This document shows positions 32,673 to 64,000 of a DNA stretch of 64,000 nt, piece by piece. The stretch's first letter is position 1. The number at the start of each line of letters is the position of its first letter. The translations under genes were made by a program, and so were the position numbers. The notes beneath the pieces are model-generated. The model saw only the letters and a program-made list of their open reading frames with translations, made no database searches and was not told where the DNA came from. The stretch is taken from positions 248,001 through 312,000 of IMG/VR virus record IMGVR_UViG_3300021137_000001. The stretch is one strand, 5' to 3'.

Positions 32673-33335
32673 TTATACTGTAGTGCTTAAATTAGTCAGT
32701 GTTTGTATGCGCACTGTGTAATCAATTTGTATTAGTCTGTTTAGCGATTTTTGCACTGGGCTAAAAATCACGTGTGTTAGTAGTTTACCGAGTCCTTCGC
32801 CTGATGCATTAAATCCTTTTAAACCCAATTCGTCAAATACAAATTGTCCGTTTAAGTCTTGACTGTTATCAAACACTGCTTGCCCATTTGGTTCGCCATA
32901 GTCTAATAGACAGCTTATAATAATATCACTATAAATTTGTCCCGGTACGTGGGTAATTGAAATTTTATTTCTTAGTGGGTCGCCGTTTGCAGCATTAGTA
33001 TCATCTACAATTTTGTAGTATTGCGGACTATATAAATCAGCATTTTGTACGTTTGTGTTTGTTGGCAAGTATGTAATAACACCAGTTGGATCAACTGTAG
33101 TTCCGCCATTACCAAAATGCATCTCAGTAATAAAATTATTACCTTTGTTGCCTAAACTTGTAGCAATTGCTTCACTCATATTTTCATAATGAATGGCATT
33201 GCGTTTGTTTACAAACACTTCTTTAGTCTCAGGGTCAAATATTTTAATATGCCCTTGCACACTGATTCCGCCGCGTTCATCGGGTTGTTTAGCTGGCTGT
33301 GGTTTAATTATTGATTCTTGCATTTTTTTATCCAT
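32673..33335 (-). CDS. virion structural protein (baseplate/tail associated)
   Basis: Position; NAIHYEN, FDELGL, LLTHVIF.PV.KSLNR.I.IDYT. Confidence 0.65.
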   Translation of the reverse strand: MDKKMQESIIKPQPAKQPDERGGISVQGHIKIFDPETKEVFVNKRNAIHYENMSEAIATSLGNKGNNFITEMHFGNGGTTVDPTGVITYLPTNTNVQNADLYSPQYYKIVDDTNAANGDPLRNKISITHVPGQIYSDIIISCLLDYGEPNGQAVFDNSQDLNGQFVFDELGLKGFNASGEGLGKLLTHVIFSPVQKSLNRLIQIDYTVRIQTLTNLSTTV

Positions 33336-49446: not shown

Positions 49447-49824
49447 TTAGCGGGCAGTAAGTGTTCTACTTTGATTATCGAATCGAAGATTCATTAAATT
49501 AGTTTGATTCGTTTGTAAATATCGTAATTCAAGTTCAATTTGTATACCTGTTTCAAACTCTGTAATTACAATATTATCAATAGCAACCCGTGGATCGTAA
49601 CTAGCAATTGCTTTTACATCTGCTGCAATGGCACTTCTAAGCGATTCAGTAAATGGATCGTATAATACATTCCAGATAATAGTGCCAAAATTTGGATTCA
49701 TCAATTTCTCGCCCTTGCGAATTTGAAAGTGATTCATTAAGTCTTGTTTAACTAGCTCAAAGTCAGTTAGACGAAACTTTTTGTCGCGTCCAACAGTTGA
49801 GAAACCTTTATAGAATATAGCCAT
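49447..49824 (-). CDS. baseplate wedge subunit, gp25/GpW-like
   Basis: LVKQDL.N......GEK.MNP.FG..I...L, YDPRV. Confidence 0.88.
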   Translation of the reverse strand: MAIFYKGFSTVGRDKKFRLTDFELVKQDLMNHFQIRKGEKLMNPNFGTIIWNVLYDPFTESLRSAIAADVKAIASYDPRVAIDNIVITEFETGIQIELELRYLQTNQTNLMNLRFDNQSRTLTAR

Positions 49825-56879: not shown

Positions 56880-57557
56880 ATGACAACTTATTATGTATAT
56901 GCATATATTCGTAGCAAAACTTCGCTAACTGCTAGCATCGGCACCCCGTATTATATAGGTAAAGGAATAGGGCAACGTGCGTTTACTAAACATAATTGTC
57001 CAGTTCCGATAGATAAAACAAATATTTTGTTTATTAAAGAAAATTTAACAGAAATTGACGCACATTTATTAGAAATACAGCTCATAGAACAATATGGGAG
57101 AAAAGATTTAGGCAACGGAATATTACATAATCAAACGAATGGCGGAGAAGGCATAAGCAATCCATCTAGCACTACTAGAGAAAAAATGGCGGCTGCTAAA
57201 AGAAATGAATCCGCTGATACTAGATTAAAACGATCAATTGCAGCAAAGAATAGAATCCGCACACCACTTAGCGATGAAACAAAACGTAAGATTAGCGAGG
57301 CTAATACAGGTAAAAAAAGAACAGACGATGCTAAATTAAAGCAGTCGGTTGCTAAGAAAGGTAGAACGTGGGAAGATATTTTTGGTATCGAAGAGGCAGC
57401 TAGAAGAAGGGATATACTTGCAAGTGACGAAGTTAAGTTAAAAATGAGTATAGCTGCGTGTAACAGAAGTGACGAAGGTGCCGCCAATATAGCTGAAGCA
57501 AATAGGAAAATTGGTATATTAAGAAAAGAAGCAAATAACAAATTAAAGGGTGTATAA
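56880..57557 (+). CDS. GIY-YIG homing endonuclease with NUMOD3-like repeats
   Basis: YYVYAY...PYYIGKG..R, E..LI..YGRKD, N.TNGGEG; SDETKRKIS repeats. Confidence 0.88.
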   Translation: MTTYYVYAYIRSKTSLTASIGTPYYIGKGIGQRAFTKHNCPVPIDKTNILFIKENLTEIDAHLLEIQLIEQYGRKDLGNGILHNQTNGGEGISNPSSTTREKMAAAKRNESADTRLKRSIAAKNRIRTPLSDETKRKISEANTGKKRTDDAKLKQSVAKKGRTWEDIFGIEEAARRRDILASDEVKLKMSIAACNRSDEGAANIAEANRKIGILRKEANNKLKGV

Positions 57558-57560
57558 TAT

Positions 57561-58460
57561 ATGGCAAGACGTGTGAACTATTTGAATAATAAAGACATTT
57601 TAAAAGAAATCGCTAAAAGTAAATTAACATATTGTAGTTTCATTAATAAAGATGTAACTATGTACGATGCTATTGTATTAAACGTAAGTGCAATTACTAA
57701 AAAATCCGTAGCAGAAGCCAGAGCAACAAGAGCAACAAGGCTTGCTAAAGAAGCACAAGAAGCTGAATTATTGCTCGGTAACAAACGCAAGTTAGATGAA
57801 TTTGCAATCCCAGTAGAAAATATCCCAGTAACAGACATTGTATTCCGTGTTATGACATGGGAACATATACCAATCGACGAAGTTAAACAGAAAAAATCCG
57901 ACGCTAAAGCACAAGAAGCGTACGACGAAGATTTGTTCGAAACTGAATACGATGAGCCTGCACCAGTTGTTAAAGTCAAAGGTGCTGTTAAGTACGTTAA
58001 ACTAAACTTTCCTCCTTTCTTTCATTATTCAGTAACCGAAGACTTAACTCCAATTGTTGTTGGTAAGAGTCACTGGAAAGGCGACTTTGAAACTGGCGGT
58101 TTTGTTAAAGATCATGGTAGCATGACGGCTAAGTTAGCTCATATGTTTGTTAAACTATGTGAACGCTATGCTACACGTAGTAACTGGCGTGGTTATACAT
58201 ACAATGACGAGATGCGTAGCCAAGCATTACTTCAATTAAGTCAAATTGGGCTACAGTTTGACGAAAGTAAATCAGACAATCCATTTGCTTATTATACAGC
58301 CGCAATTACAAACAGCTTTACTCGTGTATTAAACATCGAAAAGCGCAATCAAAATATTCGTGATGACATTTTAGAGATGAACAACTACGCACCAAGCTAT
58401 ACTCGACAGAATCAAGGCGGTAACTGGGGCGGTGGTGGTGGACACGGAGCCGACGAATAA
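57561..58460 (+). CDS. 55: late-transcription sigma factor, T4 gp55-like
   Basis: VNYLNNKD.L, NWRGYTY.DEM, FDESKSDNPFAYYT...NSF.R....EK; synteny with gp47/gp46. Confidence 0.9.
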   Translation: MARRVNYLNNKDILKEIAKSKLTYCSFINKDVTMYDAIVLNVSAITKKSVAEARATRATRLAKEAQEAELLLGNKRKLDEFAIPVENIPVTDIVFRVMTWEHIPIDEVKQKKSDAKAQEAYDEDLFETEYDEPAPVVKVKGAVKYVKLNFPPFFHYSVTEDLTPIVVGKSHWKGDFETGGFVKDHGSMTAKLAHMFVKLCERYATRSNWRGYTYNDEMRSQALLQLSQIGLQFDESKSDNPFAYYTAAITNSFTRVLNIEKRNQNIRDDILEMNNYAPSYTRQNQGGNWGGGGGHGADE

Positions 58461-58473
58461 CCGCAAATTATTT

Positions 58474-58525
58474 TATCTGCCAGTCGCCCATAACTAAATA
58501 CATTTACAGGGGATTGGCAGATATG
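58474..58525 (+). promoter_or_regulatory. late promoter inside SD/ATG-sequestering hairpin
   Basis: TATCTGCCAGTC-g-CCC pairs with GGG-GATTGGCAGATA; TAAATA at 58495-500 in the loop; ATG at 58523. Confidence 0.8.
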
Positions 58526-59185
58526 AAATACAAAAAAGATTACTATGGTTATGTATATGAATGGATAAATTCCACTAATAATATGAAATATATCGGATCG
58601 CATTACGGAGCAGTCGATGATTATTATAAAGGATCCGGCAAAGATTTTATGGTAGCATATAAAAATAACCCACAACACTTTACTATGAGAGTATTAGAAT
58701 ATGTTTCTGAAAACAATAAAAAATTAGTATTAGAAACAGAAAAAAAATGGCTTGATACAGTAGTAAATATTAAAGATGATCCAACATATTATAATCTCAA
58801 TAATGATGCGACAGGCGGATTTGGGTATTTAGATGAATCTCATATCGTTAAACGAGCAGAAACATTAAAGAAGAAACACGCTATCCACGGATTAAGTACC
58901 GAAGAAATACAATCATATAAGCAAAAAATACAAACCAGACTCGATAGAATAGCAACTACTGGGTTTACCGATAAAGAAAAAGAACAACATGCAAAATACG
59001 GAATTAAATTACAAGTCACCTTACCCTCAGGAGAAGTACGAATATATAATTCCATCGGGGCTGCCGAACGTGAGTTAAAACTTAACATTAAGTATGGATT
59101 AAAAATATGTGCCAAAAAACTTGACTTCAAAGGGTACATTCTAGTAAAATTAAATGAACCACTAATCGATTGTAGGAAAAAATGA
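58523..59185 (+). CDS. GIY-YIG (Seg-like) homing endonuclease
   Basis: GYVYEW.N..N.MKYIGSH, Y.GSG, E..WL, YYNLNN.A.GG; start moved to ATG 58523. Confidence 0.85.
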   Translation: MKYKKDYYGYVYEWINSTNNMKYIGSHYGAVDDYYKGSGKDFMVAYKNNPQHFTMRVLEYVSENNKKLVLETEKKWLDTVVNIKDDPTYYNLNNDATGGFGYLDESHIVKRAETLKKKHAIHGLSTEEIQSYKQKIQTRLDRIATTGFTDKEKEQHAKYGIKLQVTLPSGEVRIYNSIGAAERELKLNIKYGLKICAKKLDFKGYILVKLNEPLIDCRKK

Positions 59186-60195
59186 ATTTATTCAAAAAAG
59201 CTGCGGTATTTACAGATTTACATCTAGGACTAAAGTCAAATAGTACACAACATAATGAAGATTGCCTTGCGTACATTAAATGGTTTATTAGTAATGCAAA
59301 AAAAGAAGGGTGCGATGTTTGCTTTTTTCTTGGAGACTATCATAATAATCGAGCGGCAATTAATGTAGTCACGTTAAACTATAGCCTAACAGCGTTAGAG
59401 TTGTTGGGCAAAGCGTTTGACCGTGTTATCTTTATTCCGGGCAATCATGATTTATATTATCGTGACAAGCGTGATATACAATCTGCACAATGGGCAAAGC
59501 ATATTCCAAACATTGAGATTATTAATGATTTCTATCAAGAGGGTGATGTAAGCATTGTTCCGTGGCTAGTAGGAGATGATCATAAAAAGATACAAAAGAT
59601 CAATGCAAAGTATATGTTCGGGCACTTTGAGTTACCGGGCTATTATATGAATGCAATGGTGCAAATGCCAGAGCACGGTGAGATTAGACGTGAGGATTTT
59701 GGGCATATTGATCATGTGTACAGTGGGCATTTTCATAAACGTCAAACAGGTAAGAATATTACATATATTGGCAATGCGTTTCCACATAATTATGCAGATG
59801 CAGGTGATGATGAACGTGGTATGATGATACTTAACTGGGGAGAAGAGCCAACGTTTCATGCATGGCCTGATCAACCCAAGTATCGTGTATACACACTAAG
59901 CGACATTTTGCAAACTCCAGATACGTTGTTACAAAAAGGTATGCACTGTCGAGTAAACATCGACGTGGATATTTCATATGAAGAAGCAACATTTATTAAA
60001 GAAACTTTTGTAGGTACATATAATTTGCGTGAGCTTACATTAATTCCAGTAAAGCACACTGATATCGGCACAGATATTATGCTAGGCAATATTCAATTCG
60101 AAAGTATTGATACAATCGTGACAAGTCAACTAACAGCTATCAACAGTGAGCATTATAATCCAGCATTGTTATTAGACATCTATAGGAATTTATAA
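59182..60195 (+). CDS. 47: recombination endonuclease subunit, gp47/Mre11/SbcD-like
   Basis: DLH, GD, GNHD, GHFE, GHFH metallophosphoesterase motifs. Confidence 0.93.
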   Translation: MNLFKKAAVFTDLHLGLKSNSTQHNEDCLAYIKWFISNAKKEGCDVCFFLGDYHNNRAAINVVTLNYSLTALELLGKAFDRVIFIPGNHDLYYRDKRDIQSAQWAKHIPNIEIINDFYQEGDVSIVPWLVGDDHKKIQKINAKYMFGHFELPGYYMNAMVQMPEHGEIRREDFGHIDHVYSGHFHKRQTGKNITYIGNAFPHNYADAGDDERGMMILNWGEEPTFHAWPDQPKYRVYTLSDILQTPDTLLQKGMHCRVNIDVDISYEEATFIKETFVGTYNLRELTLIPVKHTDIGTDIMLGNIQFESIDTIVTSQLTAINSEHYNPALLLDIYRNL

Positions 60196-60260: not shown

Positions 60261-60851
60261 ATGGCTAAAAGAAGAATATTTACAGAGGACGAATTGAATT
60301 TAATCATTGATTTACAACGGTCGGTTACTGAGATATGCTTACTAGTTAGTGCATCACATCCAACAATAACTAAGATCAGAAAAGAGGTAGGTATCGTTAC
60401 TATTAGAGGTAGGAGAGGTGGGTCTGTTGTTCCGTCTCAACGAAGAACTATTTACTGTGTATGCCAGAATGCGGCGTGTAAAAAAGAATTCGAATCAATA
60501 AAATCAACTCCTCGTAAATTTTGTAGCCACACGTGCCAACAACGAGCTGCAAATGTTGCTGCAAAAGGAATCGGTTCAAGAAAAATGCGTAACCCTAACA
60601 CTCCTGTATATAAAAAATATGCTAGAATAGTACATGGGATGAGTCATAAGATATATTTGTCAAACATAGCTATTATTAACCCTAATGGATATGTTAGAAC
60701 ATTATGCGGAGTTAAAGATGGATGGCAATTAGATCATATCATTCCTATTAAGGAATGTTTTGAAAGAAATATACCCCCAGAAGAGGCAGCTAGTATTAAT
60801 AATCTTAGGATGCTTCCATGGAAAGATAATTTAATGAGACAATATAAATAA
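60261..60851 (+). CDS. HNH homing endonuclease with N-terminal HTH-like and Cys-rich DNA-binding region
   Basis: C....C..EF......KFCS..CQ; C-terminal LDHIIP........NNL..L....N. Confidence 0.8.
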   Translation: MAKRRIFTEDELNLIIDLQRSVTEICLLVSASHPTITKIRKEVGIVTIRGRRGGSVVPSQRRTIYCVCQNAACKKEFESIKSTPRKFCSHTCQQRAANVAAKGIGSRKMRNPNTPVYKKYARIVHGMSHKIYLSNIAIINPNGYVRTLCGVKDGWQLDHIIPIKECFERNIPPEEAASINNLRMLPWKDNLMRQYK

Positions 60852-62623
60852 TGGCATTCCGTATAAAAAATCTTACCGTGAAAAATTTCATGAGTGTTGG
60901 TAATGCAACGCAAGCAGTGGACTTTGATCGCAATGATCTCACGTTAGTGCTTGGTGTCAATGTTGATTTAGGTGGTGACGACAGCGGCGCACGTAACGGC
61001 ACTGGTAAAACAACTATCATCAATGCGTTAAGCTACAGTTTGTTTGGGCAAGCGTTGACTAATATTAAACGTGATAACTTAATTAATAAAACTAATGGTA
61101 AGAACATGTTAGTCACAGTTGAGTTCGAACATAACGGGCAAGATTATAAGATTGAGCGTGGACGTAAGCCAAACGTAATGAAGTTTTACGTGGGTGATGA
61201 AGAAAAAGAAATTACAGACGAATCGCAAGGTGATAGCAGAGAAACGCAAGCTGAGATTGAGCGTATGTTAAGCATGAAGCATGATATGTTTAAACACATT
61301 GTTGCTCTTAACACGTACACTGAACCGTTCCTTAGTTTAAAGTCGGGTGATCAACGTGAGATCATCGAGCAGCTACTCGGTATTACTATGCTTAGTGAAA
61401 AGGCTGAGAATTTAAAAGAGTTGACTCGTGCTACAAAGGATGCAATTCAGCAAGAAGAATACAGTATTAAGGCGATTGCAGACGCAAACGGACGCATAAA
61501 AGAACAAATTGAGAGCTTAATTCGTCGACAAAATATGTGGACTACTAAGCACACAGATGATGCAGCAAAGTTAGAAAATGCGTTAGCAGAGTTGCATAAA
61601 ATTGATATTGAACAAGAACTTGCAGCACACACTGCGCTTACTGCATATAATCAACAGCGCAAAGACTTAGATGATTTGGGTAAAGCTATATTGCGTGGTG
61701 AGGCAGATATTGCTCGCGAACAAAAAACTATAGACAAAGTTACTAAAGAAATTGCCGATTTAGAAGCGCACACTTGCTATGCTTGCGGGCAACATTTTCA
61801 TGATGATAAACATGAGTCGGTATTAGCGGCTAAACGTGTTTCACTTGAAACCGCAACAAATCAATATTTGTCAGATCAATCACAGTTGCTTGCACTTACT
61901 GGTGCTAAGGCAGAAATTGGTGCCCTTGGTGCACAACCTCGAGTATATTATGATAAAGAAGCAGATGCATTCCATCATAAAGGTTCAATTACTAGTTTAG
62001 AAACACAGTTAGCAACTAAGAGTGCGGAAGTTGACCCATATGCTGAACAGATTGAAGAAATGACGCATACTGCTATGGCAGAAACTGATTTTACTACAAT
62101 GAATGAGCTCGTTAAGTTAAAGGAACATCAAGACTTCTTGTTAAAACTATTAACTAACAAAGATAGCTTTATCCGTAAGCGTATTATTGATCAGAACTTG
62201 TCGCATCTAAACGCAAGATTAAGTCAATACTTAGATCGCATCGGATTGCCACACACAGTAACGTTCTTAAATGATTTAAGCGTTGAAATTACAGAGCTTG
62301 GGCGCGAGTTAGACTTTGATAATTTATCACGTGGTGAACGTAATCGCTTGATCTTAAGTTTAAGCTGGGCGTTCCGTGATGTGTGGGAGAGTTTATACAA
62401 TCCGATTAACTTATTGTTTATTGATGAGCTTATTGATAGTGGCATGGACAGTAGCGGAGTTGAAAGTTCACTAGGCATACTTAAAAAGATGTCGCGTGAA
62501 CATGAGAAAAGTATTTGGCTTGTTTCGCACAAAGACGAACTTGCGGGTCGTGTAAACAATATCATGACTGTAACAAAAGAGAATGGGTTTACTACATACA
62601 GCACCGACGTTGAAGTAATTTAA
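60851..62623 (+). CDS. 46: recombination ATPase subunit, gp46/Rad50/SbcC-like
   Basis: NGTGKTT, coiled coil with CYAC zinc hook, LSRGE, LFIDE, SHK. Confidence 0.95.
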   Translation: MAFRIKNLTVKNFMSVGNATQAVDFDRNDLTLVLGVNVDLGGDDSGARNGTGKTTIINALSYSLFGQALTNIKRDNLINKTNGKNMLVTVEFEHNGQDYKIERGRKPNVMKFYVGDEEKEITDESQGDSRETQAEIERMLSMKHDMFKHIVALNTYTEPFLSLKSGDQREIIEQLLGITMLSEKAENLKELTRATKDAIQQEEYSIKAIADANGRIKEQIESLIRRQNMWTTKHTDDAAKLENALAELHKIDIEQELAAHTALTAYNQQRKDLDDLGKAILRGEADIAREQKTIDKVTKEIADLEAHTCYACGQHFHDDKHESVLAAKRVSLETATNQYLSDQSQLLALTGAKAEIGALGAQPRVYYDKEADAFHHKGSITSLETQLATKSAEVDPYAEQIEEMTHTAMAETDFTTMNELVKLKEHQDFLLKLLTNKDSFIRKRIIDQNLSHLNARLSQYLDRIGLPHTVTFLNDLSVEITELGRELDFDNLSRGERNRLILSLSWAFRDVWESLYNPINLLFIDELIDSGMDSSGVESSLGILKKMSREHEKSIWLVSHKDELAGRVNNIMTVTKENGFTTYSTDVEVI

Positions 62624-62647
62624 TTTTACCATCCACTACAGGGTGGT

Positions 62648-62661
62648 TAAATACATATAAC
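62648..62661 (+). promoter_or_regulatory. late promoter TAAATA-CA-TATAAC
   Basis: Upstream of AAGGAG and ATG 62679; preceded by small hairpin 62628-47. Confidence 0.65.
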
Positions 62662-62678
62662 AACAAGGAGAAGTAAAC

Positions 62679-62864
62679 ATGGCAATTCATGATGATATTT
62701 TAGCAGCAGTAGAATTATACGTTTCAGAATCAGAAAAATTTGAAGTTAAAGGTGTTAAAGCTGCAGCGGCACGTGCTCGCGGTGCATTAGGCGATTTAGG
62801 TAAGTTAACTAAAGCTCGTCGTGCAGAAATTCAAACCAAAAAGAACGAACTGTCCGCTAAGTAA
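62679..62864 (+). CDS. histone H1-like Hc1-family small basic protein
   Basis: KG.KAAAARAR.AL..L.KL.K.RR.EIQ..K pattern. Confidence 0.7.
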   Translation: MAIHDDILAAVELYVSESEKFEVKGVKAAAARARGALGDLGKLTKARRAEIQTKKNELSAK

Positions 62865-62873
62865 TAACGGAAA

Positions 62874-62958
62874 ATGCTGACATTTTGAATAAATAGTAGT
62901 GTAGTTCGCGGGTGTAGGAACCCCAACTACTCTAACATTGTAAAGGAATGTCAGCATG
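62874..62958 (+). promoter_or_regulatory. structured leader: 11-bp outer stem, late promoter and inner hairpin
   Basis: ATGCTGACATT (62874-84) is the reverse complement of AATGTCAGCAT (62947-57); TAAATA 62890-95; GTAGTT..GGGT/ACCC..AACTAC 62901-30. Confidence 0.8.
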
Positions 62959-63534
62959 AATATTTATTACGTATACCAGTACCTTAGAGAAAAGGATTCG
63001 TCTACTGCTCTAGCAGGTACACCATACTATATAGGAAAAGGTAAGAACAACCGAGCATATATAGGACACAATAATAGAATACCTTCAAATAAAGAATATA
63101 TTCAAATTATTAAAGATAATTTAACTGAACAAGAAGCAATGGACCTTGAAATTATGCTAATTAAAAAATATGGTCGTAAAGATTTAGTAACAGGTATTTT
63201 AATAAATCTTTCAAACGGCGGCGAAGGAGCAAGCGGATCTGTTCGTTCGCAAGAGCACAAGACACGTATATCTCAAGCACAAACAGGAAAAATTGTTTCA
63301 GATTCAACAAGAGAAAAATTAAGTAAGGCATTATCAGGTAAAAAACGATCAGATATTGCTAAGTTTAATATTAGCAAAGCACACATAGGTCAAGTTCCTT
63401 GGAATAAAAACATACAAATGACAGAAGAGTGGAAGGCAAAACGCCCTTGGCATAGTTGTGATATTTGTGGTATTCAATCCCAAAACCTTACTAATATTAA
63501 AAGATTTCACAATAGCAATTGTAAAAATAAATAG
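62956..63534 (+). CDS. GIY-YIG homing endonuclease with NUMOD3-like repeats (same subfamily as 56880)
   Basis: YYVYQY...PYYIGKG..R, KYGRKD...GIL.N.SNGGEG; C-terminal CDIC..HNSNC. Confidence 0.88.
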   Translation: MNIYYVYQYLREKDSSTALAGTPYYIGKGKNNRAYIGHNNRIPSNKEYIQIIKDNLTEQEAMDLEIMLIKKYGRKDLVTGILINLSNGGEGASGSVRSQEHKTRISQAQTGKIVSDSTREKLSKALSGKKRSDIAKFNISKAHIGQVPWNKNIQMTEEWKAKRPWHSCDICGIQSQNLTNIKRFHNSNCKNK

Positions 63535-63538
63535 CATT

Positions 63539-63991
63539 ATGGCATATGATAATCCCTGGATCTATAATGGTACAACTTTTGATTCAGGGGATATCGGTGA
63601 ATACTACGGCTTCATTTATAGAATAACTAATATCACTAACGGACACGATTATGTGGGCCGCAAATATTTTAAAACTATTAAAAAAAGACCACCACTAAAA
63701 GGTAAGAAGAACAAACGTTTAGAAACAATTGAAACTGATTGGAAAGACTATTGGGGTTCATCAAATCGTTTAGTAGCAGATATACTAGCACTAGGTAAAG
63801 AACAGTTTACCCGTGAAATTATACATTTATGTAAAAGTCGCGGTGAAACTAACTATATGGAAGCGCATTATCAATTTAAAGAAGAAGTACTGTTAAGGGA
63901 AGATAACTATAATGGTATTATACAACTTAAACTAGGTAAAAACTCCGTTAAAGATGTAAAAATTAATAAATCAGTTGACCAACGACACTAA
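63539..63991 (+). CDS. stand-alone GIY-YIG catalytic-domain protein (Seg-like, no DNA-binding tail)
   Basis: GFIYRITN....YVGRK, DWKDYWGSS, F.REII.LC, Y.E...QF...VL, YN; start moved to ATG 63539. Confidence 0.8.
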   Translation: MAYDNPWIYNGTTFDSGDIGEYYGFIYRITNITNGHDYVGRKYFKTIKKRPPLKGKKNKRLETIETDWKDYWGSSNRLVADILALGKEQFTREIIHLCKSRGETNYMEAHYQFKEEVLLREDNYNGIIQLKLGKNSVKDVKINKSVDQRH

Positions 63992-64000
63992 ACGTAATAC

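Follow-up and report, generated by a model that had tools for sequence, protein, structure and literature searches.

A conserved structured cassette with a predicted antisense RNA precedes homing-endonuclease genes of uncultured freshwater giant phages

Why should a free-standing homing-endonuclease gene (HEG) of a giant phage be preceded by two nested RNA hairpins, and which transcript do they belong to? The question arose at a GIY-YIG-type HEG in a 64,000-nt stretch (hereafter, the window) comprising bases 248001-312000 of IMGVR_UViG_3300021137_000001, a complete 329,321-bp virus record with terminal repeats that comes from freshwater metagenomes. A preliminary description, made from the sequence alone, had proposed that an 11-bp outer stem with two additional G-U pairs, which covers part of the Shine-Dalgarno (SD) sequence and the ATG and has TAAATA just inside its 5' arm, serves as an early/late switch. 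The bulged inner hairpin was left unexplained by that model and could, it was suggested, be a stabiliser, an autoregulatory protein site or part of a mobile HEG leader module. The nearest cultured relative by gp46 is Pseudomonas phage PA5oct at only 50% amino acid identity, which makes this a distant T4-like jumbo phage, and a blastn search of the region against GenBank phages found nothing.

The structures that had been described are indeed there. Folding of positions 62865-62975 with RNAfold gave a 13-bp outer stem (11 Watson-Crick and two U.G pairs) that covers GGA of the SD and AU of the ATG, with a minimum free energy of -34.7 kcal/mol (z = -4.68; none of 200 shuffles folded as well). The energy of the duplex between the upstream arm and the TIR was -18.5 kcal/mol, as compared with -8.6 +/- 2.3 for shuffled sequences (0/200). 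The inner hairpin is formed exactly as described, with basal arms GTAGTT and AACTAC, a c-G-c segment opposite a single C, apical arms GGGT and ACCC and the loop gtagga. Its 30-nt sequence is unique in the window. The features of the region are listed in Table 1.

Table 1. Features of the HEG leader and of the surrounding genes (window coordinates)
Position	Strand	Feature	Remarks
56880-57557		HEG	Endonuclease-like ORF
57561-58460		gp55-like late sigma	phrog_12791, E = 4e-79; T4 gp55, E = 1.5e-5
58514-59185		HEG	Endonuclease-like ORF
59182-60195		gp47
60261-60851		HNH endonuclease
60851-62623	+	gp46
62679-62864	+	61-aa ORF	No PHROG match; 3' end differs from that of the HEG-less relative
62835-63537	.	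Extent of the mobile cassette (leader plus HEG)	Absent from a relative
62874-62886	+	5' arm of the copy-specific outer stem	Pairs with 62945-62957 in read-through sense RNA
62889-62895	+	Sense late-promoter heptamer ATAAATA for the HEG	Complement forms the UAUUUAU part of the antisense U-rich tail
62889-62900	-	U-rich tail after hairpin 2	ACUACUAUUUAU here; ACUUUUAUUUAU in most relatives
62901-62930	-	Hairpin 2 (the inner hairpin), proposed terminator hairpin of the antisense RNA	10 pairs, two conserved single-G bulges on the antisense strand; predicted sense TSS at g62901
62932-62954	-	Hairpin 1 of the antisense RNA	CUGACAUU / CCUUUAC / AAUGUUAG; loop and 5' arm carry the complement of the HEG SD
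62955	-	Predicted antisense transcription start	G opposite c62955, 5 nt downstream of the antisense heptamer and 1 nt before hairpin 1; inference only
62956-63534	+	GIY-YIG-type HEG (192 aa)	phrog_314 homing endonuclease, E = 2.5e-18; tblastn hits to Seg-like and intron endonucleases
62961-62967	-	Antisense late-promoter heptamer	TATTTAT on the + strand, HEG codons 2-5
63539-63991		Further GIY-YIG-like ORF	ATAAATA exactly 5 nt before the ATG (63527-63541)

Is this leader a peculiarity of one gene? Searches of the genome with blastn, nhmmer and a covariance model each found eight further copies and nothing else above noise, and each copy stands in front of a nuclease ORF (several GIY-YIG subfamilies and one HNH-like ORF). 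The nine copies share ATAAATA followed by a 5-nt spacer, a 6-bp basal stem, a CRC/C internal loop, a 4-bp apical stem with a variable loop, CTCTAAC, a short hairpin around the SD and CAGC-ATG. Of the 15 pairs, 13 show compensatory changes and 95.6% of the cells are paired, a level that none of 500 shuffles reached and that compares with 24-43% in slid controls. RNAalifold predicted the same structure without guidance. Absence of conservation or covariation of the inner hairpin, which had been named beforehand as the observation that would speak against the motif, was clearly not what we found. The outer stem behaves differently: it is strong only in the window copy, borderline in one other copy and absent from the remaining seven. 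Of 115 leaders from IMG/VR, three show significant complementarity between the upstream region and the TIR (z < -2.5), with no excess among the cassettes co-oriented with their upstream gene, and we rejected the outer stem as a general early/late switch. The core block gp55-gp47-gp46 is interleaved with five endonuclease-like ORFs, only one of which carries the structured leader, while the others have a plain late promoter plus SD.

The roughly 80-nt module is widespread in freshwater giant phages, with well over 150 copies in IMG/VR contigs. Two exact-pattern scans of IMG/VR followed by covariance-model searches gave 94 hits (53 distinct) and at least 88 hits (85 distinct), respectively. Five phage genomes of 210-525 kb (four estimated to be complete, one 69%) hold 13, 2, 4, 1 and 7 copies, whereas the model found no element in T4, PA5oct, Phosso, Atu_ph07 or S-SRM01. 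A comparison of positions 62000-64000, both strands, with Rfam 15 (cmscan, E <= 10) returned only an irrelevant weak hit at 63239-63385. The ORFs downstream of the leaders form 76 clusters at 50% identity and carry NUMOD3, GIY-YIG, SegE-type, four HNH Pfam families and a TnsA-like nuclease domain; 40 of the 76 match the PHROG homing-endonuclease family 314. One leader, on the IMG/VR contig L129 (1276-2610), precedes a 445-aa ORF. One member of the scanned set matches a head-closure PHROG (E = 3e-59); that this member is the 445-aa ORF is only a guess, and it could be a fusion or a mis-joined frame. Several leaders (L023:2538-2627, L042:10935-10964, L073:8298-8363, L087:4841-5059 and L026:825-1058) are followed by truncated ORFs of 10-78 aa, apparently decaying HEGs, so that the RNA module outlives the nuclease gene.

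The leader and the HEG also travel together. A contig from a metatranscriptome library, belonging to a relative, joins 62834 to 63538 with 36 other letters between them, so that leader and HEG are absent as a unit. DNA contigs of three other metagenomes share 62725-63717 at about 95% identity while their flanks fall below the 85% threshold, which is the signature of recent homing with co-conversion. A 63.7-kb contig of a pond metagenome, which shares the same segment at about 95% identity with much more diverged flanks, has 1946 extra letters between gp46 and the 61-aa gene (window 62618-62725), indicating another insertion site and a co-conversion tract.

The ATAAATA heptamer has the distribution expected of a late promoter. 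It occurs 71 times in the 7% of the genome that is intergenic but only 31 and 24 times inside genes in the sense and antisense orientations, respectively, which is the strongest intergenic bias and the lowest genic count of all 21 permutations of its letters. In the leaders it is invariant or nearly so. It lies 25-31 nt or exactly 12 nt before many start codons, including those of baseplate-wedge and virion genes, and in at least ten genes it is exactly 5 nt before the ATG, for example at the ORF at 63539 and a baseplate-wedge gene (window loci 63527-63541, and 32673-33335 and 49447-49824, both on the minus strand). This fits a start about 6 nt after the motif, as for T4 TATAAATA (for gene e, PMC3014915), and implies leaderless late mRNAs. 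With that spacing, the HEG mRNA would begin at the first paired base of the inner hairpin.

Which strand, then, carries the selected structure? Conservation runs past the start codon: CAGC-N5-TATTTAT is present in most leaders, and TATTTAT, the reverse complement of the promoter heptamer, keeps its distance to CAGC rather than its reading frame when the ATG is displaced by one or two bases. In a data set not selected for it, this antisense heptamer is exact in 45 of 62 leaders and has one mismatch in 12 more, while about five lack a recognizable one. In 44 leaders encoding M-x-I-Y, the third base of codon 2 is T in all 44, Ile is ATT in 42 and Tyr is TAT in 43, as compared with genome usage of 38%, 57% and 66% (p = 3e-19, 9e-9 and 3e-7, respectively). 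About half of all genic-antisense ATAAATA in the genome sit at HEG 5' ends. The position six nucleotides after the antisense heptamer is G in 90% of the leaders, a spacing that matches both that between the sense promoter and hairpin 2 and that of ATAAATA-N5-ATG in front of at least ten other genes.

Both strands were then folded. The inner hairpin is more stable as its complement in 42 of 54 sequences (although in the window copy the sense version is slightly more stable, -11.4 against -10.0 kcal/mol), and the SD-region hairpin is more stable as its complement in 59 of 59 sequences (-6.9 against -2.3 kcal/mol; Wilcoxon p = 2e-11). All five basal-stem mismatches are A.C in the sense reading and none is G.U. 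In a plain MAFFT alignment of 59 sequences read antisense, 96.2% of the cells are paired, hairpin 2 has no unpaired cell and includes 36 G.U pairs, and hairpin 1 contains a G.U pair conserved in 55 of 59. In the independent second IMG/VR set (85 sequences, which unlike the MAFFT alignment were aligned to the model), 99.3% of the cells are paired, with a covariation score of 0.70 against 0.21 for shuffles and 345 cells with changes on both sides. In this set, hairpin 2 is 99.9% paired, with compensatory changes in all 10 pairs and 37 G.U pairs against one non-pair, and five of the eight pairs of hairpin 1 show compensatory changes. The pair formed by the R of CRC, read antisense, is GC in 57, GU in 20 and AU in 8 sequences, with no A.C; we rely on the second set for this pair because the first search pattern required CC and fixed some hairpin positions. 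Sequences within the family are related, so that these counts do not represent independent events. A sense-strand model with an SD hairpin was our own initial reading and was abandoned after these tests: wobble pairs in the two hairpins exist on only one strand, and the RNA under structural selection is therefore the complement of the HEG leader. The two single-nucleotide bulges (sense C-R-C, window 62907-62909; antisense G bulges either side of one pair) and the single A linker between the hairpins are invariant although the neighbouring stems vary, for which we have found no explanation.

On the antisense strand the order is heptamer, 5-nt spacer, G, hairpin 1 with the anti-SD, the A linker, hairpin 2 and the tail. 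At least five U in an 8-nt window 0-2 nt after the stem were found in 136 of 147 leaders on this strand, against 4 of 147 on the sense strand, and the sense spacer is A-rich (0.58/0.53/0.58) as compared with ordinary late promoters (0.29/0.29/0.34), which means U on the antisense strand. However, the tail begins with AC and its U-richness is partly forced by the sense promoter, the base of hairpin 2 is A/U-rich, which is unusual for strong intrinsic terminators, and a simple terminator scan, which does not handle bulged stems, did not call it in the window copy.

Taken together, we consider it somewhat more likely than not (probability about 0.55) that the region is one copy of a portable control cassette in which two late promoters, facing each other about 70 bp apart, produce the HEG mRNA and a 65-80-nt cis-antisense RNA. 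This RNA would start 1 nt before the start codon, present the anti-SD sequence CUCCUU/CCUU in hairpin 1 and end in the U-rich tail of what looks like an intrinsic terminator. Being fully complementary to the HEG 5'UTR, it would, together with head-on transcription, hold HEG translation down, with pairing perhaps nucleated by the complementary hairpin loops. Because the leaders are alike, the RNA could probably act across all copies in the genome, as IS10 RNA-OUT does on RNA-IN. Antisense RNAs of one copy can pair with the leaders of the other eight far better than shuffled controls (-50 against -19 kcal/mol), so that inhibition in trans between copies is plausible. In the window copy, the outer stem would additionally silence read-through transcripts from the co-oriented upstream genes, the order of gp46, the 61-aa ORF and the HEG being compatible with such read-through; its two U.G pairs are wobble pairs in the sense strand, consistent with sense-strand function. 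The analysis shows the repetition, conservation and covariation of the module, the strand asymmetry of its wobble pairs, nucleotide-level selection on the second heptamer, the promoter-like genomic distribution of the heptamer, the presence of a gp55-type sigma, the HEG specificity and the presence or absence of the cassette as a unit, whereas the firing of either heptamer, the transcript start and end points and any regulatory effect are inferred from sequence, as the only RNA-library sequences of relatives are unstranded contigs. The preliminary interpretation is thus partly supported: the outer stem with its internal late promoter is a plausible but copy-specific switch and the inner hairpin does belong to a mobile HEG leader module, but the hairpin is not best read as a stabiliser or protein site of the HEG mRNA and most likely functions on the other strand.

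The most serious alternative, though we regard it as unlikely, dispenses with a dedicated small RNA and sees the hairpins and U tail as a terminator or insulator that stops or stabilises transcripts of flanking genes running backwards through the HEG, just before the next gene's own promoter. Most cassettes are opposed to their neighbours (26/47 and 70/115 in two samples, roughly 60-70%), and 7 of the 9 copies in the genome are single minus-strand genes inside plus-strand blocks, so the structured strand is transcribed anyway and a dedicated promoter is not strictly required. In four antisense-oriented copies (c237, c158, c246 and c142; genome positions 237490-237560, 159030-159080, 246540-246600 and 142600-142660), near-consensus sigma-70 promoters (TTGACT/TTGACA-N17-TATAAT) on the flanking-gene strand lie immediately beyond the leader, giving a terminator-like hairpin followed by an early promoter, as in PeSLs. 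This view, which may coexist with the small-RNA role, explains neither hairpin 1 with its anti-SD loop nor the conservation of ATAAATA at a fixed 5-nt distance from the G before hairpin 1, and the cassettes co-oriented with their neighbours (30/115, including the window copy) keep the full element.

The remaining possibilities appear improbable. A function in the HEG mRNA itself, as an ompA-type 5'-terminal stabiliser or the operator of an RNA-binding repressor, with the SD hairpin throttling translation, would fit the predicted late TSS, which would give the mRNA a base-paired 5' end, and the conserved bulges could be a protein site; however, every non-Watson-Crick variant in both hairpins is A.C in the sense reading and G.U in the antisense one, the sense SD hairpin is weak, and autoregulation by the HEG protein was rejected because the module serves unrelated nucleases. 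A purely DNA-level recombination module, allowing unrelated ORFs to be swapped behind the same leader, is suggested by the shared leader and first four codons (M-x-I-Y) of GIY-YIG, HNH and TnsA-like ORFs, by the presence or absence of the cassette as a unit and by the PeSL precedent (PMC4122927), but recombination needs sequence identity rather than base pairing, the stems vary freely while staying paired and the loops are unconserved, so that this could be a second function but not the only one. Finally, the heptamers are exact reverse complements and AUAAAUA pairs with UAUUUAU in the minimum free energy folds of copies c237 and c158, which might close a three-way junction in long transcripts of either strand as a generic version of the outer stem. 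We rejected this helix for lack of covariation: seven A-U pairs closing a multiloop are marginal in energy, variant heptamers (ATAAGTA, CTAAATA) are compensated in only two near-identical leaders, and both arms are invariant while the real helices covary, which argues that the heptamers are read as promoters.

Free-standing HEGs are the most common selfish elements of large phages, and their control is known only from a few T4-type cases, all based on sense-strand hairpins. A conserved, multi-copy antisense RNA shared by unrelated HEG families would be a new layer of control, a rare example of a phage late promoter used to make a regulatory RNA and a compact case of promoter/terminator overprinting. 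In its boldest form, which we consider slightly less likely than not, this would be a previously undescribed, abundant family of small antisense RNAs made from gp55-type late promoters embedded in the first codons of HEGs, with sense promoter, antisense terminator tail, 5'UTR and antisense promoter overlaid in about 80 bp; captured by at least three unrelated nuclease superfamilies, it would give giant phages copy-number-dependent, IS10-like restraint over their resident selfish nucleases. The analysis also yields a covariance model for a new RNA family and a sharp definition of the late promoter (ATAAATA, start 6 nt downstream) in an uncultured phage lineage, and shows that a hairpin seen in a leader can belong to the other strand and that wobble asymmetry settles which.

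The cassette can be compared with several known systems. The window copy has exactly the design of the RBS-sequestering hairpins with internal late promoters of T4 gene e, I-TevI and Aeh1 mobE (PMC3014915), in which the 5' arm lies upstream of a TATAAATA-like late promoter and pairs with the SD/AUG, so that only late transcripts are translatable, and it likewise involves a HEG in a T4-like phage that encodes gp55; that stem, however, is not conserved in the family, whose conserved part is the two hairpins between promoter and start codon, selected on the other strand. The PeSL/PmSL cassettes of T4-like phages (PMC2839356, PMC4122927) are also short promoter plus stem-loop modules scattered through a genome, found at indel boundaries and associated with gene shuffling, but PeSLs carry sigma-70 early (or Mot middle) promoters and a simple G/C stem, whereas this module carries two convergent late heptamers and two covarying hairpins, is tied to HEGs and has sigma-70-like promoters only outside its conserved part, next to some copies. 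Among phage cis-antisense RNAs, CfrI of S-PM2 (PMC2984593) overlaps a HEG in a T4-like cyanophage but is about 225 nt long and single-copy; P22 sar covers the RBS of ant from a promoter convergent with Pant, and lambda oop is likewise transcribed opposite to a phage gene. None of these has any sequence or structure relation to the present multi-copy family. A further parallel is the control of IS10/Tn10 by RNA-OUT and RNA-IN, where a mobile element restrains its own transposase through an opposed promoter inside the 5' end of the gene, which makes a roughly 70-nt stable stem-loop RNA complementary to the SD/start region that can act in trans on other copies (multicopy inhibition). The cassette described here differs in that its predicted promoters are of the phage late (gp55) type, its predicted RNA has two hairpins plus a U tail that reuses the complement of the sense promoter, and it serves many unrelated nuclease genes.
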